Assembly: GCF_963676685.1 (NCBI RefSeq)
Contig: NC_092353.1
Coordinates: forward strand, 29,574,001-29,638,000
DNA: 64,000 bases
Reading direction: 5' to 3'
Source of the DNA: Mytilus edulis
Taxonomy: Eukaryota
Part shown: positions 1,301 through 63,888 of the stretch, one piece after another
Layout of the letters: each line of letters begins with the position of its first letter
How positions within the stretch are numbered: the stretch's first letter is position 1
The notes under the pieces: generated by a model
Seen by the model: only the letters and a program-made list of their open reading frames with translations
Databases searched by the model: none
Told to the model about the DNA's origin: nothing
Made by a program: the position numbers and the translations under genes

Positions 1301-4130
1301 TATTATACTTTTATCAAAGAATATTTAAATAATAGTTGTTTATGTTTTCATCTTGCATTTTACGTCTGTCGTAACAAAATAAAGTTATAAAAGGTTCTTG
1401 GTGATTTCTTTATAAAGATAAACATAAAGAAACACGACAAGGTAATGTTTAAAAGGTTGATTTATTAAAAGATAACAATGTCTTTGAAATGCTACATTAG
1501 AAGCCTTCCAATTTCTGTAGTCGGGGGATTTAGAATTGAACATATGGTACAGCTACATGCATTAATGTCTGTTGTATAGTGTAGCGAAAAGAAAGACAAA
1601 AATGCGTCGATATCAAATAAAATCCAAAACTGTCAATATCACGGCAAAAAAAAAAAATACAGGACGAACAATTCGACATAGTTAACAAAAACTGGAGGCG
1701 ACCGCCGGTGCTCCAGAAATTGTAATCAGTATCTTCCATACGGTGATAAAAATATCATTCGGGGATGCCACAATTAAGTTGAAAAGGATGGGATAATGGT
1801 TAAAACAAATCGAAGTTATCCCGGATTATTTGAGTGATTAAACTTGTGATGGCGTCCGTTATATTTTTAGAAGGTATGAGTTAACTTCACAAATTGGAAT
1901 ACATTCTGTGGAAAATCGTACTAATTATTCTTTCATAGTTTGCATCTTTCTTATTTTCCAATAGAAATCTATGCTTTTTCTGCACTTACAATACAGTACA
2001 AAAAGATGACTGTATTCTTGATATATTTATTCATTTGTTTTATATTTAACCGTTTAATCGTATAATTGACTACTCTCTGCTATTTATAAATGGACTTAAT
2101 AATATTTCTAGATCATTGTTTTACTTGTCTGTTATTACTTCTTTTTCTTCTGCAGAGATTCAGAATTTATTAACAATTAATTACTAATCTAGCATATATC
2201 ACATATAGATGTATGGTCATAAATTACAACGGGACATGTGATGACCTGCCATTTGATGAAAATATTTTGACAATATTTGTAGTTTGTTCTCATTAGCTCG
2301 TTTTCAATCTGTAATATGATTTTCATGATGACAAATAAACAAAAACATCAGACAAGCACATTGATTTATAGGACGAAGATGTTCCATATTTCTTTGTATT
2401 ATCATTCCTTTTGATTTATAGCAGTGATTAATGGAATTTTTTTTAAAGGTCATTAGGGGTTAAAAACTAAAACATAAAGTCACCTTAGACTTAACAATCG
2501 TAGGCTCTGTCAACCTTTTTATTTATGAAAATGACATACAAATTGCAAGTTGTTGTCATACCAATGGTTTAACGGCAAAGAGTTATGAAATTGTTGAACC
2601 ACTCAGCTTAATTTTGAAAAAAATCGTCTTACCACTTAACTGTTGAATACAATTACGAAACATAAATGGTTTCCATCACTTGCAATATCTCAACATGATG
2701 AAAAGACTGCATCAGATTTATTTGTACGGACTAGAAAATTATACAAGACCTCAACCATACGCATATCTTGCATTCATAACATTTTGTTTGAATTATAGGA
2801 ATCGTGTATCACATTTATCCAACAGAAAGCCTCTTAAAACCTTCAAAGAAGAACAACAAAATAAAGTATACAAATAAAGGCAACAGTAGTAACCGCTCTT
2901 CAATTGTCATAAATCGCTTAAGCGAAACGCAAAACCAGTCACAAACCAAAACCACCTTTATGATGAAACAAAAAGAACAACAGAAACACTAAATTGCTAC
3001 CCAAAAAAATGTCAACATACATAGAAACGGACTAATTTATAACAACTGCCAAGTTCCTGACTCAGTAAAGGACATGTTAATGAAAACAAATGAATGGTTG
3101 AACCTGGTTTTATTTCTAGCCAAACCTTCCGCTTATACGAAAATTCTTAACATTCATATTTAATTTGTATTCAACGGTGATAACTCTTATAAACATAAAT
3201 CATAGAAGTATTACTGTAAACAGACTAAATGAAGTTCCCAAGTAAGACAGGAAGTAATATAAGCTAAATGTACGTATTTTATCAATGTACTTATCCAATA
3301 AGTGCTTGACTTACGATGCCTTCCGAACATGAATTACAGCCAAAAAGAAAACCTTTATTTTATTATTTTTTTTTGTTTTTGTGAAGCTATCATCATCATG
3401 TTGGTCATATTCGTACTAGTATATGTTTTTCCTTAAAAAAAATACCTTCAATTGTATAGCCCTCGAATTTTTTGTTGAATCAAGGACATGCACAAGAGAC
3501 GCACCAACGTCATAAAGGGTTATTTCTATTTGAGATCTACAAAAGTATTTGAAAAGTACACAGTTATTGAACACGTGAGGCATGATTCTTGAAATATATA
3601 GTATTATACGTGACAGTAACAGATTAGTTATAATTTTCTCTAAATCAGCGATGAAGTTAATGTCATGCATGTTAATACCAATATCTGATGAGCTATAGGT
3701 AAAATTAAGCTCAGGTTTTGCATAGTTCATACTATTAACATGAGGAAAGGTTTTTGCTTCGAATATGTGTGGGAGATGTTTTAGCTAGAAGTCGATAATT
3801 AGTCTATTCTCTAAATTAAATCGGAAGTTTGAAGACAGCGCAAATTACCACTATGTTTTGTGAAATAGCATCATAATTTAACCTTTTGACGTACTAGAAA
3901 TTTCAATCAGGAAATTATCTAAATAGCATGGCTCGTGATTAAATGCATGAGTGAAAAACAGAATTTACACCAACGAAAACAATTTACAGTAGGATTTCAA
4001 GTTTAGCTATTGTAAGTGCCTTCAGTGAAATGTCAGTTCAACGAATTCAGCAACGTAATCTTATTACCTCTATTGCATAACACAGGTAGCAGATTAAAAT
4101 CAGTTGCTATAAAATCATACCTAGTTTTAA

Positions 4131-5248
4131 GGTTACAATAAACCATTTGATGTTATGGGCGCAGCCATTTTATGAGCATAACATGGTCTTCAGAATTAAG
4201 AGTATGGCTTATCCTGATTGGTCGATATGTGCGCCCGTTATTTTTTATTATAAGAGACTTCGTGCACTCTGCTTTATACAAAAGGCAAAATAAATTATTT
4301 TCCTTAACCCCTACGGAACTGACTTGACTTTTCAACGCTAGAACGAGACACGTATGTTTAAGTGCAAATTTGATAGGCATTTGATAAGCATAAGTACACA
4401 TTACGCTAAGAAAGGCAACGCGAACCTAAATTTTTTTTCGACCAATCAATACTGTCCCAATAACTTTTCTTTTAATTCTAGCAAGGTTTCGTTAAAAAAA
4501 ATCACTTTCTAAAGTTTGTATCTCGAAAAAGGCTACCATTGTCACCGTGAAAAACGCCACATGCGGGGTGTCGGCTATGTTTGACACGGTATTATGATAT
4601 GACATTAAAAGTTGAATGTACTTCATTTTGCCTTCATTCAGGCAAAATGAAGTAACTTCAGTTTGTAATGTCTTATCATAATATAACTTAGATGTGTTTG
4701 AACTAAAAAGTATCAGATAAAGACCGATTTATATGCAAATCTATTCCATTTTTATTAAAAGCCTCTACCCCTTGAGATACAAAAGCTGACACCCCGAGCG
4801 ACACTTCATATTTTGATGAAAAAACTAGTTCTAAAACCAATTAGTTTCAAGTAAGAAGCTGGTATTCGGTTAAATTCCATGATAGGAATTCAATTCTATA
4901 TAAATGATACGAGAGGAAGTGGTCTAAAGTAGTTTTTTATCCCGAAATTTGCATATGAAGCCTCCAAATCTGCAACACGGAAAACTAGGGAGAGGTGTTT
5001 GAGGAAACAGAGCACTGAAAACGACTGCTTATGCTTGCAAGAAATACATTATGTTTCAGTTCATTCAGTGCAATACATTATACGGTACTAAGAATTCTAA
5101 AAAAAAAAAATTTTGATACTTTAACTTTCTTTGATAGTTTTTCCCGGCTTCGAAATTACCACCCGGTGTCAAACATAACAGACACCCCGCATGTGGCGTT
5201 CAACACGGTGATTGTCGCCTATGAGAAAATTAATTGTTTATTTCAAAC
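4131..5248. mobile_element. TTAA-flanked non-autonomous DNA element with imperfect terminal and internal inverted repeats
   Basis: TTAA at 4127-4130 and 5249-5252; termini ggttacaataaac / gtttatttcaaac. Removing it and one TTAA restores collinearity with the paralog at ~48681-48703. Confidence 0.8.
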
Positions 5249-8226
5249 TTAACAAACTATTGTTTTCAATATAACGAATAATCTATCCGATTTAGATATT
5301 TCTGTTCGTAAAAGTATAACATCGAAGTTCCTTGTGCGTGCGATTGATATGTATGTCTAACAAAATACGCTTCCGTACTAAAGTAATGTATATGCCGCTG
5401 ATTTGTAAAAAAAACTATATGATGTTTTCTTTCAGTTCCCTTTTTTTTTGCTCTTCACAATAACTTTCTAGAGAGGTGTCATGTGGGACCAAACAGATAC
5501 TACCACTATATATAATTTTGTTTACAATATAAAAAAAAACAATATTAGCAGTTAAAAGAGAAACTAACAAAAGCAGCCTGTGATTTTGATAATACATTGT
5601 TATTCATGCTTTAACAGGCTTCGTGTTGCTCATTCCTTATATTTCTTTATTATAATCTGTATATTATTGTTTGTCTTTTGGTCCTATTCTGGTTTTTTTC
5701 ATAGCTTAATGAGTTTAAAAATTCCTTTCATATTTTTCGCCTCTTTTTTACCAAACTTTTCAAATCTAACAAAACATAATATAAATAGTTCATGTCAACT
5801 AGACAGCCATGTAGAATTTGAAGTAACAAATTATAATATATTCTAACGAATCAGTTAAAATTCAGTTTGTGGAATGGTTTCATATAGTTCTTTTTTTCAT
5901 AGTTACTTTCTTTTAATGTAAATGGTTATAATGCAAATCGTTAAGTTGGAATTGGTAAACATTACGGTTAATGAGGTAAATAAAGATTAATTGCTTCAAA
6001 TGATGTCAAACGTTCTATAACAGTACAATGAAAACATCTCAATCATTTGAATGAATTTCAAACCCACACTTGACATCTCTGATTAAATTTTTGATCCATC
6101 ATAACTACTCTCTTTCCCTTAAACCGTGGGTTTTCCCTTTAAAATTTGAGTAAGATCCCCATATTATCTTATTTAATAGATTAAATATCAAATTAGGTCG
6201 ATGCTATTAATCTGGGTGAAAAACACAACAAAAGTTGTTTACTGAAGGGGCTTAATGAAAATGTCAGAGAACTCCCATGCAGTATTATCTGACAAACTGG
6301 TAAATATTGACAGACAGATAAATATTGACAAGATGCTAAATTAAATTGTGCAAAATCACTAAAATAATGACATATTGGATAATTGTCAACCACTATATGT
6401 TTTATGTTTGCTAATGTTTGCTCAACAGATGCAGTCCCGCTGTTTTGCATCCAATCAACGGAAAATACTTTGATGAGTTTAAAATAGTTCTTAATATGTC
6501 GAATAACCTTTGAGGAATGGGTATATTTAGAAAATACGTGTTAATACAGTTTCATCATGCCTATTATATTCTGTTATATTCTAAATAAGAACACAACTTA
6601 TAACTATATGTCAGTGACATCCTATCGTTTTAAATTGTTTCCCATTGCTGAAGTCTTTTTTTAACTTAAAATTATCGGTCAAACTAGTATACAGTACAAT
6701 TTAAATACATAGAAGTAATAGCATGAAACTAAAAGTAAAACGTTTTTTCTTTGAAACATGATTCGCTGTGCTTTAATTCATCTAATATTCAAAAATTCAC
6801 TACTCAAGTAACTAACTTTCATAATAATTTGATTTATGACAATGTTAATTATGTTGATAGATAGATTTATTTATTCTTAACTTTATAATATCAAGTTGCA
6901 TATCTTTTAATTGAGAAATATTAACCTCACGTGTACGATACGACAAAATGTTTTCAAAATTGTAAAAACTTCATGTCAACTAACCTTTCCTGATCACGTA
7001 AGGAAAACATATTTGCTTACTAAAAACAAATTAAAACCGTTATATAATGGTCATATCGCGAAACTTTTATGCATTTTTCAATCAAACAGATCAAATTTAT
7101 CTAAGAATTTGTTTTTATGCGCTCTCGGTAATTAAAGTGTTTCTTCACGAAGATTTGTCGCTGTAAAAACCAGATATACTCGCACGACATGTACTGAATC
7201 TTATCATTGAATGTTCCTCCAACTTTTCTTAATTGTTTTGGTTTTACTTTCTATTCTGAGTTATTGAATTTGTCGTTCGGGTAGGCATCCACGACATTTC
7301 ACTGAGCATGCTTTAAGACATTTGAGACGCAAATTTTTTTCTCCAGAATAAGCATGATCAAAAACTTTCCAGCTGCATCCTTAGAAAAAAGTGACAAAGT
7401 TTCATTCCATGATACAAAACTTTACACACGAGACTTTGCTTAATCGAAAGCATTGAATCAGTTGTTCTTACAACGTATGGTTCCAACGATTTTTTTTACG
7501 TTAACGCATAATTACTTTAAGATTTTATATCGTTATAAAACAAAGTAAGGAATTGAAAAACAGCTGTTGTTTAGTATCAATTTTTAGCAAATGGCAACAA
7601 CATCCTAACAAATTTCAAGTCTAGATAATGTTGACTTAGGAAAATATCATATATATATATATATTTTTAAACGTAATTTGTTTTAAAAGACTTTTGTTTG
7701 GATAAACCTTTGATCTTTTCTATAAACTTCCTTCACAGGAAGACAATTTATCAACTGATAAGGATCGTTTGGGACAGTTATATGGCTTTTTGTTTGTGTG
7801 TGTAATTTTGCGGAATTACCCATTTCTCACTTAATTCTTAGTAACTAAAGCATGCATTACAATTATCAACTAAAGCATCATCTCGTTTCCGTATTGTCGT
7901 TTTTACGATTCCAGATTTTTCATTTCGCATTACTTAATTTTCGTTTTAATGGAATAGCCAAAAGATCTGCTCAATAGATATATATCATCTAGACAAGGTA
8001 CCATTACGATGTCCTGCTATCACTTAATATACAAAAGAATATCATCGTAAATATCATGTAAGAGCTGACGTTTTACTTAATTTTTTGCGTAAAATAGGAA
8101 TTATGTGTCAGCAATTTTTATGTTATTTCTCTAGCTGTCTCATTATTCTTAGCTGTTGATATAAGAATTCGCATTGCAACAGACCTTAAATGACAAATAT
8201 TAAGACTATCAATGTAACAAGTGATG

Positions 8227-15300: not shown

Positions 15301-16346
15301 TATTTGCAGGATATTACATCACTAGCAACAATAATATTAACATAATCGATATCTAAAACGCTTGAGTTTAAAAATATCAAATGCTTAAGATAACTCCTTT
15401 AATTATTAACGCAAAGTAATCACACATATATATATATTAACAAACATACAGGGGTTTGTTTAGAACAAGCTAAGCAGAACCAATCATACCGCATGTAGAT
15501 ATATAAAGAACAATACAGTACAAGAATGAAAAAATGTAAAATTATTCAAGGTAGTTTATAAACAACGAACACTTATTGAGAGTGAATCTTAAAACAGAAT
15601 CTTTTGCCTAGAGGATATCTAAAATATACTCCGACAAGAGTTGACATATAAACAAAGCATAAAAAAGATCAACAATAAACTGAAATAGTCAGTACTGTTT
15701 GAGCCGCTAGTTGACAAACTGAGGAGAGGTAAGTTCTGCTTACTATATATCCATTCTTCGCAACCATGTTACAATTCCAAGGGAAAATCATGATGCAAGA
15801 ATAACTACTACGAAGTTGGTTAAATTTGTAAATGTAACAATGCAATCTTTGCGATATTTTGAAATGGTTAACATGTCTCTCTAGAAAGATGAGGAATTTA
15901 TTGTAGTGATAACAAAATTTGTAAAGATGACAACAAAGTTTGTGCATTATTACACAGAGTCGCCCTTCTACATGATCTTGCTAACTCAGATATTGCGTCG
16001 AAATGATATTTAGGGTATTTTTATCGCCATTACTAGCAGATGATTACTTATTCATCGAGAAGCAACACTTTAATGCAAATTTCAAATTACTGATCAATTG
16101 AAAACTTCACAAAAATATAACACAAACCATTGTATTCGGTATAGATAATTTTCTGATTTGTCCATTTTTTTAATTTTAGAAAAAAATACGTATGAATCAG
16201 ATATTTCTGTCTCTATAGTAGTCGTGAATTCAACAGCACATATATACACACAAACAAATAAAGAATATTATATTATCGCTATTGTGTGTTGAGAAAAGTA
16301 TAACATATAATATTAAAAGATCTCAACCAGCTGAAGGACGCCTCCT

Positions 16347-16670
16347 AAAAATGTAAAACAATTCAAGCGAGAGAACTAACGGCCTTATTTATGTAAAAAA
16401 AAATGAACGAAAAACAAATATTTAACACATAAACAAACGATAACCACTGAATTACAGGCTCCTGACTTGGGACAGGCACATACATAAATAATGTGGCGGG
16501 GTTAAACATGTGAGCGGGATCCCAACCCTCCCCCTAACCTGGGACAGTGGTATAACAGTAAAAAATAAGAACAAACTATAAAAATCAGTTGAAAAAGGCT
16601 TAACTCATCAGATGGACAAACATACAAGTGGACGTGGCCGGCTCCCGACACAAAAAAACACAATGAACAT
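16347..16670 (-). mobile_element. Interspersed short repeat family B (twister-like ribozyme bearing)
   Basis: Homologous copies at 63499-63888, 52288-52895 (two in tandem), 62182-62475/12601-12780, 53870-54005 and 58993-59125; variant at 29222-29531 and 37386-37520. Confidence 0.88.
16444..16550 (-). ncRNA. Candidate type-P5 (circularly permuted) twister ribozyme, family B, best-preserved copy
   Basis: RNA CCACUG ucc CAGGU ua GGGG GAGGG [uugggaucccgcucacauguu] U|AA CCCC GC CACAU..AUGUG CCUG UCCCAAGU CAGG a GCCUG uaauu CAGUGG. P5 CAGGU/GCCUG plus CCACUG/CAGUGG; P2 GGGG/CCCC; P3 CACAU/AUGUG; P4 CCUG/CAGG; L4 UCCCAAGU; GAGGG and UAA as in the twister consensus. Predicted cut between 16504 and 16503. 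Confidence 0.75.
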
Positions 16671-25026: not shown

Positions 25027-25432
25027 TAAAATTGAAAATGGTAATGGGGAATGAGTCAAAGAGACGAAAACCCGACCATAGAACAGACAACAGCTGCAGG
25101 CCACAAATAGGTCTTCAATGCAGCGATAAACTCCTGCATCCTGAAGAGTCCTTCAGCTGGCCCCTAAACACATATGTTTCTAGTTGAGTGATAATGGACG
25201 TCATACTAATTACTAACTCCGAATTATACACAAGAAACTCAAATTAAAAATCATACAAGACTTACAAAGGCCAGAGTCTCCTGACTTGGGACAGGTGCAA
25301 AAATGCGGCAGTTTTAAACTTGTTTATGAGATCTCAACCCTCCCTTATACCTCTAGCCAATGTAAAAAACGCACGACAATACGCATAGTAAAACTCAGTT
25401 TAAGAGAAGTCCGAGTCCAGTGTCAGAATATG
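25027..25432 (-). mobile_element. Interspersed short repeat family C inside the lectin intron (other copies 30134-30226, 53778-54152)
   Basis: aaaattga(g/a)aatgg..atg(g/t)ggaatg.gtcaaagagac.acaacccga is shared by three loci. Confidence 0.85.
25269..25358 (-). ncRNA. Candidate type-P5 twister ribozyme, family C (P2 mutated in this copy)
   Basis: RNA GGCUAGAG guauaagg GAGGG [uugagaucucauaaacaaguu] UAA aacu GCC GCA uuuu UGC a CCUG UCCCAAGU CAGG aga CUCUGGCC. Closing P5 is GGCUAGAG/CUCUGGCC. Confidence 0.6.
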
Positions 25433-25498
25433 TAAACTTTTTTAATTGTTGAATTCATATTTTTGTTTAAAACCTGTCTAATCAATTCATTTTTTCAG

Positions 25499-26612: not shown

Positions 26613-29600
26613 ATACTAACATTTATTCGATTTATTATAACAAACTTGCTTTCAGTCGGAAACGTGTTCAGAAAAGTTTTTTCTTATTCGGTTTTGGTCC
26701 AGCAAAAGTTTATTGTGTGCTTTAGTGTGTGAGAGAAGCCTTAGAGAGTGCCAAAGAGGAAATATTTATCACAGATTGGTGGTAAGTGTATTGTGTGCTT
26801 TAGTGTGTGATAGTGTGCAATAGTTAGATCTCATCATGAAGTATTACGAATAGGCTACGTAGGATTTCATCATTCCCTTTGAAAGTTTTATCAATCTAAA
26901 ACAATTTCTTTTATGTGTATTTCACTTCAAAATAAATACAGATAGAATCGATTGATAATGACAAAATGTACAGGAAGAGATGATAATGTTAATAAACATA
27001 ACATAAATAATTATTTTGTTAACAACTCTTATTAGAGTTATTTCCCTTGAATTGTTATACAAAATTATTTGAAAAATATGTATTTCGAGAACCCAAAGTT
27101 TTGTAGATATAAAACCTTCACCAATAATCTTCAGTTCATGTGACATATAATTTCAAGACAATTTTAAATGATCACTGAGTGTTATATAACTGCATTCGAC
27201 GTTTTAGGCGTGTCGGAATAGACGACAAATCTTTGGTTTGGTGACCGGTGACGTTTTCTGTAGTTGTTAAATTCATTGCCATTGATGACTATCTTCTCGT
27301 TAGATCTTGTTTTATATCATTATCACGTCAAGTTACAATTATGAAGATAAAATTATAACCTTACACATTGATCATACATAACATCGATTGTTGTCCTTGA
27401 AATGCTATTCTGATAATATAAAATGTTAGTCTGGTATGATTTCAATTACTCTGAATCAAACATGGATAGATACAAATTGTACAGTTGATTTTGACATGAT
27501 ATTGAGCGAAGTAATCAAGAACAATGTAATTTATATTCAAATCTCAAGTCACTTATAAATAAAACGGTTTTCACAGTTTCGTCAAAACTGATTTTTTATC
27601 TGTTGGATTGTTTTACGGAATTAATCGCCTTTCGGTACGTTAATTGTATTACTTCTGTCATAGGAAACCAAATCGCAATTGTCACATCAATAAGGCTGCG
27701 AGAACAAGATTTAGTTATTATTTTATACATAGAATGTGTTATAAGAGATTTGTCAATAACTATGTCGGTTTACCAATATTACATTAATAAAGAGTTGACA
27801 AGTTTTGAAGCCAACGAACGCATAAAACAATAGTACAATTTTCAAATAGCATTAAAACCAATGAGTGCATATAAAAAGAGAATGACACGTTTCAAATACC
27901 AAAAATGAAACAGGAAAACAAAAGATGCATACTACAAAAACATTTTGAAATTATAAATAATCAAATAGAAAGGTTTGTTCCGGAAAAGGATTCTAATAGT
28001 GTAATTTGAAATTCAAGATAGCAAATAATAACTGCAAGACAAGTATTGTAAGAAAAGTTGTTGGTTGAATGTCATCCAAACAGAAACAACATATGATATC
28101 ATTAGTAGCATACAGATAAAGAGAACTTGAAGTTAAAATAAAAAGAGCGCTCAGAGAGCTACTGAGTTTATCACCCTTAAAATAATTGGCACTTAAGTAC
28201 AAATTGTTATTTAGGTTTATGCCATCATTGATACATAGTTTGTTTAGACAAAGCAGTGAGACTCCGTTTCAATTAGCGATTTAGATACATTATGTTTCAA
28301 ACTCAGCGTACTTAAACAGACATCTTCAAATGACTGTCAACTAAACTATTTATTACACATTAATTGGACTGTTTGTTCACGTTTCCATCGGTTGGCAATG
28401 TTCCAAATGGTTTCCTGGTAGACTCGCAAAATCAAGACTTCAAAATAACAAAGATTTATTGAAAATGAAAAAAAAAGAGTTGTGCTATAAAGTAAAATAA
28501 CGGACAACAAAAAGACAGATATAACCAAAACGTAAAATTAAAAAAAAAAACGAACTAAAAGGAAATTTCAAAAAGGAAAGCCCTTTATCAAATGGCAAAA
28601 TCAAAAGCTCAAACTCATCAAACAAATGAAAAACAACTGTCATATTCTTAACTTGATACAGACAATTCCTTATGTAAAAAATGGTGGTTTTATACCAACT
28701 AAACCTGTCACTTGCATGACAGTCCTATTGCATTCCCTGATATTGACAACGATGCGTCAGCAAAACGAAAACAATAACAATAGAGATAAAGATGTCAAAA
28801 AAATTTGGGATATACCAGTCATCATTGTATGATAATCATATTCACAATAAAACAAATAGCTATTTAAACAAAGAAATATAAAATGGTATATAAACACTTT
28901 ATAGACTATCGAACACTGTTCTATGACCTTCAATAATATGCAAACCCATATATTCAGCTATAAAAGCCCCCAACATTGTGAAAAATGATGAACAAATCTA
29001 GAATGACCTGATTTTTTGCTGAAAACTATTAACGAAAAACAAATATGAAAGAAAGCAAGCTCCTAAAACTAATAACTTTCATGTCTTAACATGTTTGTTA
29101 ACTCTAAAAAAATAATTCGGGAAAAATTTTGAAAATAGTAGTTTGAAAACATTTTAAACTCCCATGTTTTAAAAAAAGCTAACAGGAAAATATAAAAGCT
29201 TTATGACTAGTTTAAAAACTTTGGATACCATTAAAACATTTAATCCCGCTGCAATTGTTTGCACCTGTTCTAAGTCAGGAATTTGATGTTCAGCAGTATT
29301 CGTTTGTTGACGTGGTTCATAAGGATTTCTCGTTTTTTATATAGATTAGACTGTTGATTTTCCCGTTTGACACTAGTAATTTTTGGGGCCCTTTATAGCT
29401 TGCTGTTCGGTGTGAGCCAAGGATCCGTGTTGAAGACCGTTCCTTGACCTATAATGGTTTACTTTTATAAATTCTGACTTGGATGGAGAGTTGTCTCATT
29501 GGCACTTATACAACATCTTCTTATATCTATCAAATACATTTTATTGTGGAAGACAAACCAACATATGACGAAAATTATACAAAATTTCGAAATGTACGCT

Positions 29601-31127: not shown

Positions 31128-33815
31128 CAGCAAGTCAAAATAGCGGCTCCTTAGTTTAGAACTTTGGATTCGACAGTAGCTTACGAGAAAATCATGGAAA
31201 TTAGAAATAGCAAATGTTTAGTTTGATAATTAAAAGAAGTAAGCAATTTTTTTCAAGTGGTGATTTACGAAATAATTCATGCAAACAACATATTTATACG
31301 AGAGTTTTAAATTCATCTAACAGGGAGTAAAAGTTTTTCAATTACCGTATTTGTTCTATTAGAATCGAAATAATTCATGGAAACAGTAACGCTCAGGATA
31401 AAATTCAAATATCACGGCCCAGGCCATGTGTAAATTTTCGACAAATCTATGGCTTCCGTGAAATATTTCTTAATTAACAATTACAGAATCACTTGTTTTT
31501 GATAAATAGCAAGGTTCAAATTTTAAGTCTCTATCGATTGCTATTCAGAATCGAGTACAGTTTTCATTAGAGTACTTTAGTATATAGAATAACGTTCAAA
31601 ACATAGTCGAGTACCATGGTTTAAACATGAATAAAATACCATAATCAGATTTGAATCAAGTACAGTTAACTAACAAAATTTAAGATATACCAGTAATTAG
31701 TGTTTACAGCAATGTGATGTCTAGCGACAGATAGATGTTTCGCCCAATCCGACTGCATCATTCTTGTCGACAAATGGCACCACTTACTTTACTTCGAAAG
31801 TATAAGAAATGACATGGGGACAGACTCAGGGCACGATCTGCACATGGAAACTGTTTATTTACATATTCTTCATTTACTTGTAATCATCTTTAAAAAAAAG
31901 ACACTTCTTGACTTGAGTGGATGCAGCCATTTATAATCTCAACCAATGAAACTTATTATCTCGATGATTCGACATGCTGTCTTAATCTTACAATGGTGAA
32001 GAGATTGACCAGATCACAAACCATGCCTACAATGTACAGATGGACTGAGAAACCAATAGGAAAGTCAAATAAAAAAGAATCACGGAATCTTCAATAAAAT
32101 GACAAAATCAAAAGCTTAAACACATCAAACAAATGTATAATGATCGTCACATTCCTGACTTAGTACAGACATTTTCTTATGTAGAAAATGGTGAATTAAT
32201 CCGGGTTTTGTAGTTAGTTTTAAAAACCTCTCACTCATATGACAGTCGCATTAAATTCCATCATATTGACAACGATGAGCGAACAATACAAACAGACATT
32301 ATAGGTAAAAATAGTGTTACACCAGTCATCATTGTGTTATACTATCCATAATCACTCTTAAACTCTTAAAAGCAAAACAAAACAAAAAAACAGACAAAGC
32401 ACATTCGCAAAAACGAAAGACAAGATTAGAAAAACTTAACACAGCACAATAACTGAATTACGGGATGTAGAAATACCGAGCCACCTAGAATCAATTCTTT
32501 CAGACCATCGTGAATTATTTGTGAAGAAAATTTATAAACGATCTACCTTTTAGAAAAAGGACAAGACGTCGATAATTTTTCGCGATTTATTTGGTAAATA
32601 AAGTGTATATATATTATGTTAAACGGCAATGTAAAAGTATGATACTAGTAAAAAATTGAACTTTTTATACCACTGAAAATACGTAACTTATCGTTTTCAA
32701 ACTAGTTCATGTATATTTCTACGGTTCAAGTAAGGATTTCAATAACTTCTTGAAAATCTATATTTACTGTTAGTCTTATAGTCGTTGTAGTTATCTATAA
32801 ATATATATTTGACGATTTCTATCTCTATTTTTGAAGAATCTATGTAGCATTAAATAGCTCTCAATCTGCTGATATATTCATAAGTTGCAGTTATTTTGAT
32901 GGCAATCTTTCAGTTATAGACTGATGGTAATCAGAATCAAAATAATGACAAGGCCGCTCACTAAGTATTGTATTCCAATGAAAACATATCCTATGCTTAA
33001 TTAAAAAAATCTCTTGGAAATAATTCATGTATTTTATATATCAAATGTTTAAATTTTACTTTTAGTAGAAAACGGACACGAGGCCCATCAAATATTACTT
33101 TATAGTAGCTTTTTATCACAAAAATGTCACTGTGAATACCAATAACATTACTTTGAAATTTACCACCGATGGCAATAATTTTCTTTGGCAAAATATTTCA
33201 TAATGCATTTTTTGTGCAATTTACATTGCCAACAAATGATTGCCTTAAGATGGCAGTAGTGTTCAATTTTATAAACTTGTTAGACAGTTACACTTACCAG
33301 TTTTGTACTAAATTGTGACCCATTTTATTATAACGAACATTTAGTTAGAACCTTTTTGTCGTATTTTTTTTCAACTTTTAAAAACTAGTAAAACTGCATT
33401 CAGCTTTGAAGGTTGCTGAAACGAAAACTGCTGTTTCTATAATATCCGGCACCATTAACTTACTAGGAAGTTATTTGAACTGAACTATAGATTTGTCTTT
33501 GATTACGTTTTGCCTACTTGACGTGTTGTATATCGAAATCGTGTTTATGCATACTTATGCCAACAAGATGCACATGACTCACGATTATCTTAGACTTTTA
33601 TGTTTGTGAACTACCGTAATGTCTATTCCTACGCATAAATCGAGATGGTTTACATGTTGTTCTGAAATCATCTTCCCATTTGACTTTTGTTTTTAATATA
33701 CACAACAATGTATGGTTCGAAATAAAGTGAATAATTATGTCGTCAACAATGTTAATGAAAACAAAGTAAAAGCTCGATTAAACCTTAGCAAAACATAAGT
33801 ATTTTAATGATTTAA

Positions 33816-34201: not shown

Positions 34202-35436
34202 TTAATGCCTCTATTCTGTAATTCTATTGAGTTTTAAAAGCGTTGACCATTGACACAATTTAAGCATGACGAGTATCATAGCTCCATACAAATAATGCTC
34301 CAGTCACTACACTAAACAATTGATTAAAGAAACCTCAAATTGTCAAATGAAAGTATGTGTTATTAGCTTGTATAGATGATGCATTTATTAAGCAATGTCT
34401 CCAAATGACCAACATACTGTATAATTATGCCCAAATAAGGAAATACAATTGAAAACTCCTCTCAAATGCTTTATTGCTTAGGCTACATATAGTTCTGACA
34501 GTCAATAGCTACATATGGCCACGCTAGCTCATCAATTTTTAGAACAAAGTTAGCTTTAAAGGCTTCGTGTTTAAAACATAAAAATGAAACCAGAAAGACA
34601 ATGTTGAATCAAGGCAACACGTTGAAGCCTGATTGCATAAACAAACCTCTGCACATGTATTTAATTTAGATTTGTAGACAATGTCGCCTATAACAGACGC
34701 ATTAGCCACGCTCGAATCAACAAGGTGCAAAATTAAGTACGCGTTGTAGAGCATAAAGGACTATTTTTTTTCAGAAGGTTTTGTCAATACATTTAGGTAA
34801 TATAATCAGTATATCATATAACTAGTTAAATACGTTTTCTCTAATCTAAAAACATAACAATAAAGAGTAAATATAATCAAATTGATTTCAAAGTATATAT
34901 AATTCTTGCAATAGAATACGTTTTAATACCCCGAAAATTATGTAACTTGACATTAAGATCTCTTAAACCATCACTATGCAATGTTGATTATCGATTTAAC
35001 ATGCGTGGTTTCTATTTTGGTTCTGAACATCTCATGTTATATATCCAATATCTGTTACATTCTTACAATTTATTTAATCAGCATGATATTACATAACTGA
35101 TTAAATCACCTTACAGCACAAACCATTGTTAAAAGGAATAAAATTAAATCCAATCAAAAGTTAAATTACAAAAATTCCGAACTCTGAGGATAATTCTTAA
35201 CGGAAAGGTCGTAAGTAAATGCCAAAATCAGAAGGTCATGCACATCAAACGAATAGAAAACAATTTTCATATTCCTGACTTGGTACAGGCACTACATGAT
35301 TAAAATATAAACATTTATTTTACTTTTCCTCTTAATATAATAAGTAATGTGACTTTTTTCAGTTTTCGATGAGTTTAAATTACTTTCATGAGTTTTCTAA
35401 AAAATCTTCGGAAAGTGTCTAGCAAACGGGACAAAG

Positions 35437-36356
35437 AGAGAGGGACGAAAGATACCAAAGGGACAGTCAAACTCATAAATCTAAAACAAACTGACAACGC
35501 CATGGCTAAAAATGAAAAAGACAAACAGAAAAACAATAGTACACATGACACAACATAGAAAACTAAAGAATAAACAACACGAACCCCACCAAAAACTAGG
35601 GGTGATCTCAGGTGCTCCGGAAGGGTAAGCAGATCCTGCTCCACATGCGGCACCCGTCGTGTTGCTTATGTGATTACAAATCCGGTAAATAGTCTAATTC
35701 GGTAGGTCAAATTCATGAAAGGGAAGGGGATTGTAGTTACGACGTGAGGAACATAATATCCGATATCATTTGTGAAATGGTTATTCCATAACGGTCAACC
35801 AACTCGTGATGGCGTCCGTAAAATTTACGAAGGGATGATTTCAACTTCACCATTTGGAACTCTTGATTTAATAGCTTCCTTGTGAGCAGTAACCCTCTAT
35901 CAAGAAAATCATGATAGGAAATGCAAGCACGGGAATATCGTATCAATTGAGAGATATATACCCCGTATGCAGGTGCTGCTGGAATGTTGCTACTTAGAAA
36001 TGGAAAGTTCACAATTGGAAAGCTGAAATCATCTCTTTTGTCGTAAAGTTTTGTCTTCAACCGACCCTCATTGTCAATTTCTAGATGTAAGTCAAGATAT
36101 GAAGCTGACTTAACTGTATCTGTAGTATCCTTTATCTCCAATTCGATGGGATAGATGCGTTCCACATAGTCACCAAATTTTGAATTGTTTAGTGAAAGAA
36201 CGTCATCTATATAGCGGAAAGTAGAGTTAAAGGATATTGCTAACTTCTTATCTTTCTTCCTAAGAAGTTCCTGCATGAAGTCAGCCTCATAATAATAAAG
36301 AAACAAGTCAGCAAGTAGAGGGGCACAGTTTGTTCCCATTGGTATGCCGACAGTCT
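35437..36356 (-). mobile_element. 5'-truncated Penelope-like retroelement (RT C-terminal half plus 3' UTR) with 6-bp TSD
   Basis: Begins TVGIPMGTNCAPLLADLFL, contains FRYIDD, YLDL, LYDKRDDF and SNIP..PAYGVYISQLIRYSRAC (PLE RT motifs). No C-terminal GIY-YIG before the stop, consistent with the N-terminal-endonuclease (Naiad/Chlamys-like) PLE clade. Flanked by ACAAAG at 35431-35436 and 36357-36362. Confidence 0.9.
35737..36356 (-). pseudogene. Truncated PLE reverse transcriptase ORF (motifs B'-E and thumb)
   Basis: Uninterrupted ~200-aa frame with YIDD catalytic motif; N-terminal RT motifs and endonuclease are missing. Confidence 0.88.
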
Positions 36357-40660: not shown

Positions 40661-43600
40661 AACACGAATAAACACCAATTAATCATAACAAAAATCACAA
40701 ACAGAGATAAGGCGTTTTTATGTATATCATTTTGTAGTCTTCGTAATACAACAACAGATTTATAAAGATCAGTGAAGATTTAAATCAGCTTAATTTCGAA
40801 ATTTTTATTTTGTAAGATGAAGTTTATATTGTTTAAGACTAGCTGTAAAATCAATCTGAACAAATTGAATCATCAAATCTATTATATTGCAAAGTGAATT
40901 GTATGCATGCATTTTATTTTGACGGAACAATTCGTCTACATTTCAAAAGCATAATCTATTATATGACAGGTTTGTTATATTTATGATTGATAACATATCT
41001 GTTGACATTTACGAAATTCTGCTGCAACTTGATACATATTGATTACATTTGTGTAAATATGCTCTCCTTGTCAGCAGTTCTTATCCTTTTGTCTATAGAA
41101 GAGAATCTTAGAATTAATCTCTTGACACTCCGTTTATTTTATGTAGTTTTCATCGTTTACGTGTCGATTTGTGACACAACATTTTGCTTTCTTGCAAAAC
41201 TAGACCAAACTAAACTTTACAGGTACGCATTTTGCAATATTTCAAATTGACAAACCTTTTTTCGTACTATTCATTTCATGAATAAAAAGACTAAATTTTC
41301 AGTTAAGCTTTATATAAGTGCGTCATTCTGCAACACGTATCTCTACAAACAAAAAAGTTTCCTTCCAAAGGACTTATTCCATCTGCAATTACGAATAAAT
41401 TTCAAATAAACAACAATCTCAATAATTTGACTAACGAGAGTTTGTTACATTAGATTGTAGCCGATATAACTGGCGCAATGATAAATACCTTTTACTCAAT
41501 ATTTGATGCATTTAAACCAGTTTTGACCATTTTTGTTTTTACATATTTATAGATGAAGGCGATAACAATAGTTTACCAACTTTCAAGTCTCACGAATCGA
41601 TTAAGGAAAAAAAACGGTAAATATTGCATTACACTCAAAAGGATAAAAAAAAAATGGATGCATGAGCATGGTAATCGTTTATTGCTCTGTTTGTATCTGA
41701 CACACTATATGTTGATTTTATTTTTCTCATATGATTACCAAACATATTCGTTCGTAACATTCTGAATGAACGAGGATGTTAAATTTGATATATACCTTTT
41801 TTGCTTATTTGTTACATATTTATTTCTTTGTATAGTGATTAAGATTATAACACACTGTTGGATGTTGTTCCCTTATTTTTGACATTTTTACCTATTACAT
41901 TTTTATGTCTATTTGTTTAGACCCCGCATCGTTGTCAATATAATGGAATTTGATGCTACTGTCATACAAGTGAGAGATTAAACTACCTATAAAACCAGAT
42001 TCAATCCACCATTTTCTAAATAAGAAAATGCCTGTACCATTTCAGGAATATGACAAATGTTATTCATTCATTTAATGTGTTATTGTATGCAAATGTACGC
42101 TAACGATTATTTATGAAACGTTAGCCTGTTCATATCCCTGTATTAGGATGAAAAGTGTGTTTGTAAACGGCAATAATTTAGTCACGTTAAAATTAAAACA
42201 TAGTTTATATTTCCACCTTCCAAAATATAAGGCAAATGAAGATTTTGACCCATATAACATGTACCAGTATCTGTGTCAGCTCAATCCTCCTTCATATTAC
42301 ATAACACAAGATTCGTTATTCCTTTTGTTTCTCTGAAGTCTTAATTAATAAATCTTCCTTTTATGCACTATAAAGCGATTAGTCTAATAGATTCCTTATT
42401 CCGACAAATAATTCTTATACCATAGTACTTGGATAATATAATATCCTCATCTATATTCACTGAGTTTTATATATGACATTTAGCGTTAATTTTCTTTAAT
42501 GTAAAGTATTTTTTATGATTCATACTATAAATAATAGCGGATATCGATGTTTTGGATCTTAAAGATCTGCCATCAATACCAAGTTTTCCACATTATGAAA
42601 ACAGGGGAAGTTTAAATACGGAGAAAAGGGAAGAACTATATTACCTAAAAAGTATAAAAAAGGCAAAATTTATTAAAAGTCCTCTATGCCTGATAGAGTT
42701 CGAACCTTAGTTTCCTAGAAATTTAATAGTTTTTCAAAGATAAATTTTAGACACTATGCTGTAAATTATGTCGGTACCTTATTGCTCCACGTTTAATCAT
42801 CAGTGAGCTTTTATGGAGTACAAAACGGTAAACCGATTACTCTCACTTGCTCGTAGCTATTTACATCTTAAGATAGGTGTTTTAATGTCAACAATATCTC
42901 AACTCCTTACTTGTTGTTGCTTTTCTTTTAAATACTGACCTTCCTTGCATGGCATAGCATTGCATAGAAAGTGACATTGACTTTATTGCATTATCGCGTT
43001 GTTCCCTTGTAAATCATCTTAAAAACAATTTATAACCTCAATATTCAGAGCATATTGATGTTCTTGTTAATATGTCTACACAAAAGATGAGCAATGGATT
43101 TTCACGACATAAATGTTGTATATCAGTCTGGTTTTACTGATGTTGACGTGTTAATACTTTTCTTTTGCAATTTATATTCAATATAAAAAAAAGAATCTTT
43201 ATATAAAAGCCATTCATGATTTGAAAAAGTTTGCAACTATAAAATGTCAAAATGAATAGTGCTTTCTGTTTACTGTCCAATAAACAGACAAAAAGCAAAT
43301 TAGATAATTGTAATTCTGTTTAGTAGGTGCCCATTAAACCTTTTTACTTATTTGTTATATTGAAACTCATACCTATTACCTTATTCTCATGCTGATATTC
43401 AACATATAGTAGCTAGGAAAATATTTATAACTGACCGTTTTGGATATCGAATTCACAATTCAAACATTGAGTTCCAAATATTGTATCACGAAAGATACTT
43501 TAATTCTTTTTAGTTTGAACCTACTTAAGCACGTAAAAGTATATTTTTTCTGCTCTTGTTATGATGCAACTTGGATAAAAATTGTACATATTTGGATTTA

Positions 43601-47280: not shown

Positions 47281-47821
47281 TTTAATAGTCATAATCTATT
47301 AAATGAAATTAAACCGGGTCACAAACTAAAACGAAATACAAGAAGAAACAAACAGAACAACAGAAACACTAAACTGCTACACAAACAAACGCCAATATAC
47401 ATAAATCCTGACTATTTAATGACACCTGCCATATTAATGACTAGGTAAAGGACATTTTAAGACACAATTGTGAGTTGAACCTTGTTTTATAGCTAGCAAA
47501 ACCTTCCGCTTACATGACAAAGTTTAATATGTATATATTATTTGTTCAAAACGATGATATCTTTTATAAACATTAATTATAGGAGTATTAAAAAGATTAA
47601 ATAAAATAAGAAAGACAGAGATATTAGCTAAATGCAGACATTTGATTATAATAATATGCTTATCCAAAATAATTTGTCAAACGATGCATTCCGAGTATTA
47701 ATTACTGCCAAAAAAAAACCTTTATCTTATTATTTAATTTTTTTCTGTGAAGATAACATCCTTATGCTGGTGATATTCATACTAGTATATAGTCTTCCTT
47801 TCAAATTACCTTATGTTTAGT

Positions 47822-48063
47822 TAACGCATCAATGTAAATATAATGGAATTTGATGAGACTGTCATCAAAGTGAGAGGGTTAGCGCTATAAAACCAGGTTT
47901 AATCCACCATTTCTACATTTGAAAATGCCTGTACCAAGTCAGGAATATGACAGTTCTTGTCCATTCGTTTCTGATGCGTTTTGTTATTTGATTTTGCCAT
48001 GTGATTATGGACTTTCCGAATTGATTTTCCTCTGAGATCAGTATTTTTGTGATTTTACTTTTT
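47822..48063 (+). mobile_element. Interspersed short repeat family A inserted after the duplication (others: 1-97, 8470-8650/57280-57450, 14965-15105, 23730-23815, 28533-28860, 29930-29995, 32090-32290, 35165-35292, 41820-42080)
   Basis: Shared ...tgattttgccat..gat..ggactttcc...ttttcctc.gagttcagtatttttgtgattttactttt 3' end; absent at the paralogous site ~3450. Confidence 0.88.
47858..47954 (+). ncRNA. Candidate type-P5 twister ribozyme, family A
   Basis: RNA ACUGUCAU caaa GUGA GAGGG [uuagcgcuauaaaaccagguu] U|AA UCC AC CAUUU..AAAUG CCUG UACCAAGU CAGG aau AUGACAGU. 8-bp closing P5 stem, same P4/L4 and UAA; P2 is imperfect. Predicted cut between 47900 and 47901. Confidence 0.6.
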
Positions 48064-49317
48064 ATATAGCCTAATTAATTCGTAAAGTTTTTGTTAAATC
48101 AAGAAAATGCACAACAGACGCACCAACAGTCACAGTCACCGATTTGTTATAATTTTTTTCTAAATTAGCGATGAAGTTCGTGTCATAGATGTTATTTACA
48201 ATATATATGATGAGCTAGAAAGTTAAAATTAAGCTCAATTTCTGCAGAGTTCTTGCTTATATCATAGAGAAATGTTTTTTCTTTGAATATGTGTGAGAGA
48301 TTTTTTACTGGAAGTCCATAATTCGTCTATTCTCTATGTTAAGTTGGAAGTTTTGAAACACACTAACACGTTTATATGTTGCGTTTTTCCTCAATCAAAA
48401 TAGTATATTCGTAAATTGCCATTATGTTTTGTGAAATATCGTCATAATTTAACCTTTTGAGAAATTTCAATTAGGAAATTATTTAAAAAGCATGGTTCCT
48501 AATTAAATGCATGAGTGAAAAACAGAATTGGCACAAAAGAAAACAATTTACAGTAGGATTAAATTTAGCTATAATAAATACCTTCAGCGAAATGTCAGTT
48601 CAACGGATGCAGCAACATAATCTTATTAACTCGATTGGATAACACAGGTTGCAGATTAAAATCAGTTGCCATAAAATCATTACCTTGTCTGAATAAATTA
48701 TTGTTTTCAATAAACGAATTATCTATCTAATTATGATGTTTCTGTTCGTAAAAGTATCAGATCGAAGTATCTTGTGGTTGCGATTGATACTTATGTCTAA
48801 CAAAACATGACCAATATGGGAAAGAGTTCGAATCCAAACAAAAATGGTTGACGATATCGGTTGGAAAACATTAAAATACATTTTCACAATTTGTGGTTTC
48901 CTAGGTCACAAACATAAAGATAGAGTATTTGTTTTCCAATTAAAATTGTGTTCTTATGTATTCATGAGGAAACATTAAATACCATTTCGTACTTTTAATA
49001 CCATGACCATTTTTTGATAAAAATGATTTGAAATTTAAGGCTATGTAATGCATGTTAATTGCTTCAATGATCTTTCAACATACTCTCAATAAAATGCGTT
49101 AACAACAGAGTGCTTGTTTGTTCTCATTCTGCATTGTAAACTTACAAGGTTCTAATAGAATTTTTTCATGAATGAACAAAACAATAAATACTAAGTAATC
49201 TATATGCAACTGATTTGTTAAAATCAATCTATGTGTTCTTACTGATTGCTTCAGTTCATTTATTTGTTCTGAAATCGGTAAATGTTTGCTCTTCACAATA
49301 ACTTTCCAGAGTGTCAT

Positions 49318-51646: not shown

Positions 51647-54153
51647 CTAGAAGTTTTAAAACCACCCAATTAGGACATTTTGTTTATATGGCTAACGATA
51701 TGTGCATCTAGCCACTTGACCAGTTGACGACTTGCATATATATTTGATCAAGTTGCACATTTATTATCAAGTTCGACTGAATTTTATTTAAAGGCTTTTT
51801 AATAATGTCAGATTTGAAAGAAATACATGTGAAGTATATGTAACAAATCTTTTTGTTCAACACAGAATGTTAAAAGACATATAATTGAAATTGATGATCA
51901 ATAAGTTGGTAAGCTTTAATTAGTTGGAAAAAAACGTTATAAAATATAATAAAATGTATAATTATGTACAATAAATTTGTCAAATTTTATACTCATTTAG
52001 TCATTGTGAAGGGCATGCATATAATCATTCGGCCAACAATAAAGAAATCAAAAGATTGAATATTTTTATACAATGTAATAAAATTATGTGTACATGTGTT
52101 AATTACAGTGCTAGTGGAATGTGTATCACCAGCACAATAGTCAGAACTTCTGTGTTGGCGCCATGATTTAGGGGCATAAAGAGTTACACTAGTCCGTCTG
52201 TCCCGAACGTCCCATAAAAACGGGTTACACTCTTCTTACTTTAATTTGCCTCAACCAAATACTAAAAAACTTATACACAATATATAAAAGAAGCTGGTGC
52301 ATGAGTGCCAATGAGAACTCTCCACAAGAGACAAAATGACACAGAAATTAACAATTATACAATGTAGCCTAGGTCACCACACGGTCTTCAACAATGAGCA
52401 AGGTTCATACCGCATAGTCGGCTATTAAAGGCACCGACATGACAACGTAAAACAATTCAAACGAGAAAACAAACGGTCTAATTTATGTACAAAAAATAAA
52501 CGAAAAACAAGATAGGCACGTGCATATAAAATAAGGCGGGGTTAAACATGTAAGAGGGATCCCAACCCTACCCCTTATGTGGCATGAGTGCCAATTAGAA
52601 CTCCCAACAAAAGACCAGATGACACAAACACTAACAACTATAGGTCATATACAGCTTTCAACAATGAGCAAAGTCAATACCGCATATAGTCAGCAATAAA
52701 AGGCACTGAAATGACATTGTAAAACAATATTCAAACGAGAAAATAAACGAACAAATTTATGTACAAGAAATGAACGAAAAACAAGTATGTTACACTTAAA
52801 AACGACATTCATTGAATTACAGGCTCCTGACTTACCACAGACACATACATACCGAATAAGGCGGGGTTGAACATGTAAGCGGGATCCCCACCTCAACACA
52901 TAATCAAATTTGAAATTTTTAAGTGTCACTTTTACTGTTCAAGAGTTATCATGTCCCTTTGAAAACATAAGAATTGCTGACTCTTTCGTTTCCTTTCTCT
53001 TAAATAAGTCTGACTCAATCAAATGTTAGTATTCACATTACCCCATAACACATATCTATTAAGTTCGATATAGGGTCCCGATGGCGTCACTGTTCATGAG
53101 TGTTTAGATGTAAAAAGTTGTGGTACGAGTACCAATGATACAAATGCGAACCCAGAGCCTTGAGATAGGAAAACTGCTAAATCTATTGTTTCCGTTCTTT
53201 AACTTTAATTTGCCCCAACCAAATGTTTTGAAACTTATTCACAATGCTTATGGTCACAAAACGGTCAAAATTACGCAATTACTGCATCTATATGTGAAAG
53301 TTTACTCATTTTTTTCACAAGCAGGGGCATCTGTGGTTAATAGACATATTCTACATTTATTTCAGTAATCAGCTTATTTACTTCCATTGAATTCTTCTTT
53401 AAATAGACTTAACTTGCGCATTTTTTTTTCAGGATCTCGGTGCAGTTTGGTAACAGACAGTGATATTTCAAGTTGAATGTGACCAACTTAACAAAGTGTT
53501 TCACTAGATTGAGCTCTCTGTCTAAGTGTACTTTAAAGGTTCTTAGCCTTGAGTTCAGTTTATTGATATGCGTATACCTTCTGTGTGAATTTTTATGATG
53601 TAAAAGCAGACTATCCATACCTACATGTCCATGAAATGAAATCTAAGGTAAAATGATTGAAACATTTTGCATTATCTATCACAACTGGCAGCACACGATG
53701 CTACTGAAGCAGTAAATTTTCTTACTTGATATTCGCAGAAATTAAAGGATTTAGTTTCATCTGAACCAAACATTCTTAAAAATTGAGAATGGAAATGTGG
53801 AATGTGTAAAAGAGACAGTAACCATGTCAAAAGAGCAGAAAGCAGTCAAAGGCAACTAATGGGTCCTCATAGCTGACTATGCGGTATGGGCTTTGCTCAT
53901 TGTTGAAGGCCGTACAGTGACCTATAATTGTTAATGTCTGTGTCATTTTGGTCTTTTGTGGATAGTTGTCTCAATGGCAATCATACTACATCTTCTTTTT
54001 TATATCTTCAACAAAGCGAGAAAATCCCTCGCCCAGAGGCGGGCTTCAGATGGCCCTTAACAAAATGTGTACCAGTTCAAACTTCAAATTATAAAATAAA
54101 CTTACAATTAAAAACATACAAGACTAACAAAAACCAGAGACTCCTGACTTGAC

Positions 54154-63498: not shown

Positions 63499-63888
63499 AT
63501 AAAAAAGAAGTTGTGGTATGATTGCCAATGAGACAACTATCCACAAAAGATCAAAATGACACTGACATTAACAACTATAGGTCACCGTACGACTTCAACA
63601 ATGAGCAAAGCCCATACCGCATAGTCAGTTATAAAAGTCCCCGATGAGACAATATAAAACAATTCAAACGGGAAAACTAATGGCCTCATTTATGTAAAAA
63701 AGAAAATGAACAAAAACAAATATGTAACACATAAACAAACGACAACCACTGAATTACAGGCTCAAGACTTGGGACAGACACATACATAAATAATGTGGCG
63801 GGGTTAAACATGTTAGTGGGATCCCAACCCTCCCCTAACCTGGGACAGTGGTATAACAGTACAACATAAGAACGAACTATAAAAATCA
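63499..63888 (-). mobile_element. Family B repeat inserted after the duplication; twister-like domain 63746-63851 with P4 disrupted
   Basis: Near-identical to 16347-16590 but P4 reads UCUG/CUUG; absent at the paralogous site ~13875. Confidence 0.85.

Follow-up and report, generated by a model that had tools for sequence, protein, structure and literature searches.

A probable type-P5 twister ribozyme in the 3′ tails of Penelope-like elements of the mussel Mytilus edulis

A short repeat at positions 16444-16550 on the minus strand of a 64,000-nt stretch of the Mytilus edulis genome (NCBI RefSeq assembly GCF_963676685.1, contig NC_092353.1, positions 29,574,001 to 29,638,000 of the forward strand; hereafter the window, whose first nucleotide is position 1) raises the question of whether a self-cleaving ribozyme is carried by abundant mussel repeats, and if so what kind of element spreads it. 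A first-pass annotation had proposed that three "anonymous" repeat families of otherwise dissimilar sequence (A, B, and C) share a circularly permuted, type-P5 twister-like motif and represent non-autonomous twister retrozymes. We do find such a motif in several abundant repeat families, with twister-clan models as the best matches and with covariation in helices P3 and P5 and in pseudoknot T1, and we conclude with a probability of about 0.72 that 16444-16550 is a genomic copy of a type-P5 twister-class ribozyme, forming a conserved part of the 3′ untranslated region (UTR) or pseudo-long terminal repeat (pseudo-LTR) of a Naiad-type Penelope-like element. The carriers are neither anonymous nor non-autonomous: their tails are homologous to each other, and are the tails of elements encoding a reverse transcriptase (RT). 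The parts of the motif are as follows.

16352-16641, minus strand: family B copy bearing the motif, an internal piece of a ~660-nt Penelope-like element tail with both ends cut
16444-16550, minus strand: complete type-P5 twister-like motif of family B (sequence, centroid fold, and Rfam twister-P1 match)
16550-16545 (CCACUG), bulge UCC, and 16541-16536 (CAGGUU), minus strand: 5′ strands of P5, pairing with CAGUGG at 16449-16444 and AGCCUG at 16460-16455
16535 (A) and 16534-16531 (GGGG), minus strand: junction A and P2′, the latter pairing with CCCC at 16501-16498
16530-16526, minus strand: L1 strand GAGGG, aligned to GAGgG of Rfam Twister-P5 in a family C copy
16525-16505, minus strand: 21-nt spacer UUGGGAUCCCGCUCACAUGUU replacing P1, with two palindromes inside
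16523-16516, minus strand: palindrome 1, GGGAUCCC
Within the spacer, minus strand: palindrome 2, ACAUGU (consensus AACAUGUU), ending beside the cleavage site
16504-16502, minus strand: predicted cleavage site U16504 / A16503 A16502, aligned to the UAA of the Rfam twister models
16501-16498 (CCCC) and 16497-16496 (GC), minus strand: P2 and L2, the latter being the T2 strand (Rfam twister model alignment)
16495-16477, minus strand: P3 hairpin, CACAU, 9 nt, AUGUG (centroid fold)
16476-16473 (CCUG), 16472-16465 (UCCCAAGU), and 16464-16461 (CAGG), minus strand: P4, L4, and P4, aligned to cCGGUCCCAAGCCCGg of the Rfam models
16460-16455 (AGCCUG), UAAUU, and 16449-16444 (CAGUGG), minus strand: 3′ strands of P5 (sequence and centroid fold)

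Read from 16550 down to 16444, the order is thus P5, A, P2′, GAGGG, spacer, U/AA, P2, GC, P3, P4/L4, and P5′, and the centroid fold of the family B motif is exactly P5/P2/P3/P4. In the family alignment almost every family has an A ahead of P2′, the G-A-G-G of the L1 strand and the AA after the predicted cleavage site are invariant between families, and the L1/L4 core nucleotides as a whole are invariant; GAGGG, N/AA, GC, and UCCCAAGC are all present in B and C, save that the final L4 base is U not C. G16530 occupies the position of the catalytic guanine, and the adjoining GGG is the T1 strand; as already noted in the first-pass annotation, GAGGG goes with an L4 of UCCC in B and C, so that T1 consists of three L1-L4 pairs, GGG/CCC. 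The T2 partners of L2 GC are L4 G16466 and U16465 (C-G plus G.U), and other families have AC, giving A-U. P2 has four pairs, GGGG/CCCC in B, C, and the metagenome families H1-H3, and AGGG/CUCU in the metagenome copy L186. The permutation ends in P5, in that 12 of 14 family representatives have closing helices of 6-12 bp adjoining P2′ and P4, built from at least nine unrelated sequences; the closing stems that had been described as differing by family yet always pairing do so, for A and C as stated. All strings quoted earlier for A, B, and C lie at the places quoted, and the cleavage position predicted between 16504 and 16503 is the one that aligns to the UAA of the Rfam models. The copy at 16352-16641 corresponds to positions 213-500 of 661 in the full B tail (95.5% by BLASTN).

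Comparison with the type-P5 twister (Rfam RF02684, clan CL00120) reveals i) the same order of elements from P5 to P5′; ii) all core nucleotides but one, together with T1 and T2 complementarity; and iii) the optional P3 and P5 stems, which earn no score from the Rfam model, at their canonical places. The mussel motif differs in having a 21-nt spacer with two palindromes instead of a P1 helix, an L4 that ends in U with a T2 pair that is G.U or A-U rather than G-C, a P2 of GGGG/CCCC, scores below the gathering threshold, and a host which is the tail of an animal retrotransposon present in tens of thousands of copies. Type-P5 twisters are already known; the mussel motif is a new variant of the twister class in a new host element.

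No match was found in the whole 64-kb window at Rfam gathering thresholds. In truncated mode, however, 16455-16508 aligned to positions 1-56 of twister-P1 (25.1 bits, E 7e-4), spanning UAA, P2, GCC, P3, and P4/L4, and a wider search gave the same stretch 16.9 bits; a well-preserved copy of family C (locus L061, 7084-7150) aligned to the entire Twister-P5 model (23.1 bits, E 0.0033 in 131 nt), as did a copy from a different organism (L173, 20.3 bits). At permissive thresholds the best matches on these stretches were always twister-clan models. An expectation that Rfam models would recognize the motif was therefore half borne out: twister-clan matches exist, but all lie under the gathering scores, mostly because the P1 helix is absent and because the P5 model counts P3 as an insertion. 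Genome-wide runs with RF02681 (which is twister-sister) and RF02684 gave no match among the 69-79 candidates scored, too few for a fair test. The core itself is abundant: CCTGTMCCAAGTCAGG with up to 2 mismatches occurs 8 times in the window (0.02 expected), and an exact search for the 16-nt P4/L4 core across the 1.37-Gb genome gives 20,036 copies, compared with none for the reversed sequence. Of 30 core matches sampled without bias, most were family C, and several had RT-like open reading frames (ORFs) just upstream.

Indeed, in families A, B, and C as well as in the metagenome families an RT homologue precedes the motif on the same strand by 340-930 nt, and the three families are therefore the 3′ tails of autonomous Penelope-like elements, mostly 5′-truncated; the 5′ ends of tail copies vary, and their 3′ end is sharp. 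Identities of the RT to that of family C, and distances from RT to motif, are given below.

Family C: distance about 665 nt, the motif lying midway along the pseudo-LTR
Family B: RT 69% identical to C, distance 705-730 nt
Family A: RT 42-46% identical, distance about 909 nt
Window copy at 35.3 kb: RT 53% identical, distance 565 nt
Metagenome families H1-H3: RT 70-86% identical, distance 654-668 nt
Metagenome family G: RT about 51-53% identical over the last 40 aligned residues, distance 341-357 nt

Locus L061 is a full family C element, in which a 558-bp direct repeat (2871-3427 and 6838-7395, 98.4% identical) surrounds about 3.4 kb and the twister motif lies inside the repeat; from one twister to the other the unit measures 3,968 nt (about 3143 to 7110). 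It encodes a GIY-YIG-like N-terminal region followed by RT motifs; upstream of the latter the layout IIYLLT(TGA)NKPGCGIQYVGET...EH...LNWIKKLQTVYPLGLN can be read directly. A SECIS_1 match at L061 6810-6874 scores 41.4 bits (gathering 35), L061 contains in-frame TGA codons (5311), and in intact copies from metagenome contigs the frame is broken by TGA alone, at cysteine-like positions. The family C element is a selenoprotein-coding Penelope-like element. In intact copies (L144, 2031-4094, minus strand) the TGA positions fall in the N-terminal zinc-knuckle/GIY-YIG part. An NCBI gene model, P0065 "sulfotransferase 1A1-like [Mytilus edulis]", holds a piece 84% identical to the element protein, and is likely an annotation artefact.

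Selenoprotein-coding Penelope-like elements have been described in clams and spiders, and Naiads are reported to include selenoprotein members in bivalves, to have pseudo-LTRs, and to be without a canonical hammerhead (Craig et al. 2021, PMC8557442), a layout that the L061 element shares. In the mussel, no hammerhead model matched at E<=1 in L061 2800-7450, and none matched in the window at gathering thresholds. A hammerhead suggested by the CUGAUGAG box at 16612-16605 (minus strand) was rejected, with no hammerhead model matching at E<=10; near the family A motif, GUCCAU at 47956-47975 (plus strand) is a hammerhead-like piece, also with no hammerhead model at E<=10. Pfam searches with the element's own pieces gave RVT_1 alone (E 0.11) and no match to GIY-YIG, and Pfam and PDB sequence searches with the RT and endonuclease pieces gave nothing significant. 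Because Pfam support for the domains is weak, though protein-database homologues carry PF01541 (P0053) and PF00078 (P0064), we regard the Naiad assignment as likely rather than proven.

The core is kept across RT lineages that are 42-98% identical and in 115 metagenome contigs. It is retained where the RTs are only 42-69% identical, though the remaining tail can no longer be aligned; between the C element and the B copies, for example, whose RTs are 69% identical, BLASTN aligns nothing but the 80-nt twister core. The motif also occurs in contigs of other samples, in elements with 70-86% identical RTs. Paired changes accompany this conservation. Family B and C differ by a compensatory A-U/G-C change in P3, and one subfamily pair shows a compensated change in P5 (AAUGA/UCAUU to AAUGG/CCAUU), the broader comparison of cognate with non-cognate P5 strands being blurred by related families and two mis-parsed rows. 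We also counted pairs in 10 UCCC-class sequences, using as controls partners slid by 1-3 columns and 500 shuffles. In the proposed structure 93.9% of cells are paired, as against 22-48% when slid; the covariation score is 0.170 compared with 0.106 in the shuffles, none of the 500 reaching 0.170; and both sides change in P2, P3, palindrome 1, and palindrome 2. For T2 (GC or AC versus GU) all cells are paired (100%), 6 of 10 by G.U and 4 of 10 by A-U, and no both-side change was seen among these sequences.

The strongest single result is covariation of T1, a long-range pair which the twister fold alone predicts. Counted genome-wide with one pattern frame (reversed controls 0-4), the outer T1 pair is G-C in 11,651 copies (GAGGG with UCCC) and U-A in 10,085 (GAGGU with UACC), whereas the mismatched combinations total 2,893, namely G/A in 2,347 (GAGGG with UACC) and U/C in 546 (GAGGU with UCCC). 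The first-pass annotation had suspected this covariation from family A, on the strength of UACC and GAGGU at 32224-32230, while noting GAGGG in the 47.9-kb copy. Near 32.2 kb GAGGU does go with UAC(U/C), and the 47.9-kb copy does combine GAGGG with UACC. The covariation is real, though at genome level only: the family chosen to illustrate it belongs to the mismatched minority and has a degenerate P2. A C-G to U-A change of the P3 closing pair, reported at 29.25 kb, is likewise present, though in a single decayed copy lacking the GAGGG strand. Copies with an altered first P2 base number 292, almost all of them single decays of B or C, with a few AGGG/UCCU.

Three single metagenome copies are divergent (L186 7494-7610, L183 2679-2795, and L188 814-934). 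In that of L186, P2′ AGGG and P2 CUCU make four pairs and are compensated, and the spacer is a real 5-bp hairpin (ACCAU/AUGGU) adjoining the cleavage site; another of the three has three As following the cleavage site.

What takes the place of P1? The spacer has no fold of its own (0 to -1.5 kcal/mol as a monomer), and in all families it is about 21 nt long and includes two blocks, each complementary to itself. The first block reads GGGAUCCC, GAGAUCUC, UAGCGCUA, GGCAUGCC, or GGCGCC, and the second reads AACAUGUU, AACUAGUU, AACCAGGUU, or AAUCUGAUU, its final base directly preceding the cleavage site; the palindromes covary between families. They are not hairpins, because the loop would have no base or one, and spacer homodimers are predicted at -15 to -20 kcal/mol (-18 kcal/mol for family B). 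P1 is dispensable for twister cleavage (PMC5408937), and the small hammerheads of other Penelope-like elements cleave as dimers according to Lunse et al. 2016, as cited in PMC6765202. We therefore favor pairing between two ribozyme copies, which is probably what the palindromes do. In a test for cDNA run-off among ~10,000 copies, break-points (copies with all four bases before A(+1) off consensus) number 24 at the predicted site and 6 four bases further upstream. In one of the 24 (G000:C2:12989081-12989120), AGGG is fused straight to AACCCCGCC, an exact loss of the 21-nt spacer plus U.

We infer the following course of events. The sense transcript would fold into P5, P2, P3, and P4, with T1 joining GGG to the CCC of L4 and T2 joining GC to the GU of L4; the spacer palindromes would pair two ribozyme copies into a dimer, as in the small Penelope-like hammerheads; and the sense RNA would cleave itself between U16504 and A16503. 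Where an element stands in partial tandem, two such cleavages could release a unit-length RNA, giving the motif a part in the retrotransposition cycle. The twister reading has good support in families B and C, and both are probably true self-cleaving twisters with cleavage predicted at the U/A step. That Naiads replaced the hammerhead with a P1-less twister, active solely as a palindrome-paired dimer and excising unit-length RNA from tandem transcripts, is a more tentative idea to which we would give less than even odds.

Several observations weigh against a cleaving twister. The P1 helix is missing, and the last L4 base is U where the twister conserves C. Every Rfam score is under gathering (37.6 for Twister-P5, 67.2 for twister-P1); by our estimate from E 0.0033, some 8 chance matches of 23 bits are expected in a 1.37-Gb genome, and the covariance score alone thus proves nothing. 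P4 is CCUG/CAGG everywhere, and P4/L4 yields no covariation because it never varies; pair counts elsewhere lend moderate support, because the sequences are related and independent events few. The break-point excess at the predicted site is weak. The UACC class (~12,400 genome copies, and dominant in the metagenome contigs, JYMV01) poses a further difficulty: P2 in its families A, D, and G is one base shorter and has 1-3 pairs, the Rfam alignment covers their P3-P4 part alone, and an altered P2 length may disrupt the twister active site (review, PMC5408937). The consensus of family A is GAGGG with UACC, leaving T1 unpaired, although an A-like copy from another sample (L158) has GAGGU. Family A is nonetheless young, its copies being 97-98% identical, and not every element therefore needs an intact motif in order to move. 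The degenerate P2 and mismatched T1 imply either that such elements are inactive passengers keeping other functions of the tail, or that the block does something besides cleaving; versions of the UACC class, family A in the window among them, may be inactive derivatives.

It is from these same families that the most serious alternative draws its strength, namely that the motif is a conserved structured tail RNA with another job (recognition by the element's own RT, dimerization, or packaging), twister-derived or twister-like and no longer cleaving. The degenerate-P2 families A, D, and G and the T1-mismatched, young family A are abundant; invariance is greatest in the P4/L4 hairpin and the palindromes; blocks further downstream in the tail are also conserved in layout; and arrays and chimeric families retain P4/L4 alone or the 3′ half alone. 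A recognition hairpin, however, needs no GAGGG, N/AA, GC, and UCCCAAG at exactly the twister positions, nor a covarying long-range T1, nor R-U complementarity in T2, and B and C keep a perfect 4-bp P2. We consider this explanation unlikely, if clearly ahead of the two that follow.

Chance resemblance to a twister in one ancestral repeat, multiplied by transposition and conserved merely through recent common descent, would account for the subthreshold scores, for a P4/L4 that is identical everywhere, and for the several matches of such score expected in a genome of this size. It does not account for retention of the core between RTs only 42-69% identical when the rest of the tail cannot be aligned, for compensatory changes in P3, P5, T1, and the palindromes, for the motif in contigs of other samples on elements with 70-86% identical RTs, or for shuffle and slide controls falling far below the observed pairing, and we think it very improbable. 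Just as improbable are small non-autonomous "twister retrozymes" spreading through circular RNAs, as originally suggested, since the many short copies without ORFs are 5′-truncated tails of RT-encoding elements and, despite the two-motif tandem layout around one full element, copies (that in the window included) are dispersed with a single motif rather than in short tandem units.

Penelope-like elements are known for hammerheads, and the Naiad clade, which is dominant in many invertebrate genomes, is the one large clade among them reported to be without a ribozyme. Cervera and de la Pena are said to have described hammerhead ribozymes of Penelope-like elements in 2014. Those hammerheads and the mussel motif, although different ribozyme classes, share the kind of host, the place within it (the pseudo-LTR), and self-complementary blocks suggestive of two-copy pairing, the mussel dimer being a prediction. 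In bacteria, twister and hammerhead occupy the same gene neighbourhoods. The mussel motif would matter mainly as filling in the "missing ribozyme" of Naiad elements: a twister at the hammerhead's place would parallel the bacterial case and show that what is needed is self-cleavage rather than any one fold. If the hammerhead-to-twister swap is true, Penelope-like retrotransposition would require self-cleavage in general, from whichever ribozyme class, and the >20,000 copies would be by far the largest twister repertoire known. The motif would also provide a natural twister that is P1-less and possibly dimer-dependent, add molluscs, with a very large number of copies, to the hosts of twisters, account for the high conservation of one block in some of the most common mussel repeats, and supply annotators with a marker for Naiad tails.

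Two other systems invite comparison. Active twister variants are found at the 5′ end of Perere-3/RTE non-LTR retrotransposons of Schistosoma mansoni (PMC8501958; PMC7761336). Like the mussel motif these lie within a retrotransposon, have a weak or absent P1 and an N/AA with variable N, and reach high copy number; but they are type P1, sit at the 5′ end of a long interspersed nuclear element (LINE), and trim the upstream transcript, whereas the mussel motif is type P5 and lies in a Penelope-like 3′ UTR or pseudo-LTR. Their activity is shown experimentally, while the mussel motif is known from sequence. Metazoan retrozymes (Cervera and de la Pena 2020, PMC7229834) are repeats of bivalve genomes that carry ribozymes and are believed to rely on Penelope-like elements; they are short non-coding tandem hammerhead units giving rise to circular RNAs, whereas the mussel copies are truncated tails of coding elements with one twister. 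A literature search, which did not extend to the hit lists of Roth et al. 2014, gave no publication connecting twister to Naiads, Penelope-like elements, or molluscs, and none with the core string in it. In November 2026 a paper of the field's main laboratory still cited hammerheads alone for Penelope-like elements.

The window contains further copies and fragments of the same tails.

25027-25435, minus strand: family C tail copy, its motif (25253-25374) with P2 and P2′ decayed
35854-36351, minus strand: Penelope-like RT fragment (53% identity with the family C element's RT by tblastn)
47814-48064, plus strand: family A tail copy, motif 47842-47970, L4 UACC with GAGGG, P2 degenerate
63496-63888, minus strand: second family B tail copy, motif 63736-63864, P4 mutated

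In the family C copy P2 is AACU and P2′ has a deletion; the strings first quoted for this copy are present, in a motif that is itself decayed. The RT fragment sits 565 nt upstream of a UACC-type P4 hairpin (35274-35289) in the tail at 35156-35291. Altogether the 64 kb contain 20 or more fragments of tails from families A, B, and C, for example at 1-97, 28527-28687, 32093-32271, and 41925-42055, and further at 52279-52892, 53869-54005, 58991-59129, and 62241-62468. Another family, represented by 29169-29314 (plus strand) in the window and by L032 and L050, has UAA-P2-GC-P3-P4/L4 with unrelated sequence in the place of P2′ and GAGGG, and as it stands is half a twister. At L046/L047 (G000:C1:942166-945294) a 113-bp tandem array has the P4/L4 hairpin CCUGUCCCAAGUCAGG as its sole part of the motif, and resembles a satellite that arose from a piece of a tail. 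Finally, the end of the family B copy at ~16352 abuts the reverse complement of a C-type tail CCAGCUGAAGGACGCC block (window 16320-16351), a junction of two elements head-to-head as is common for Penelope-like elements.

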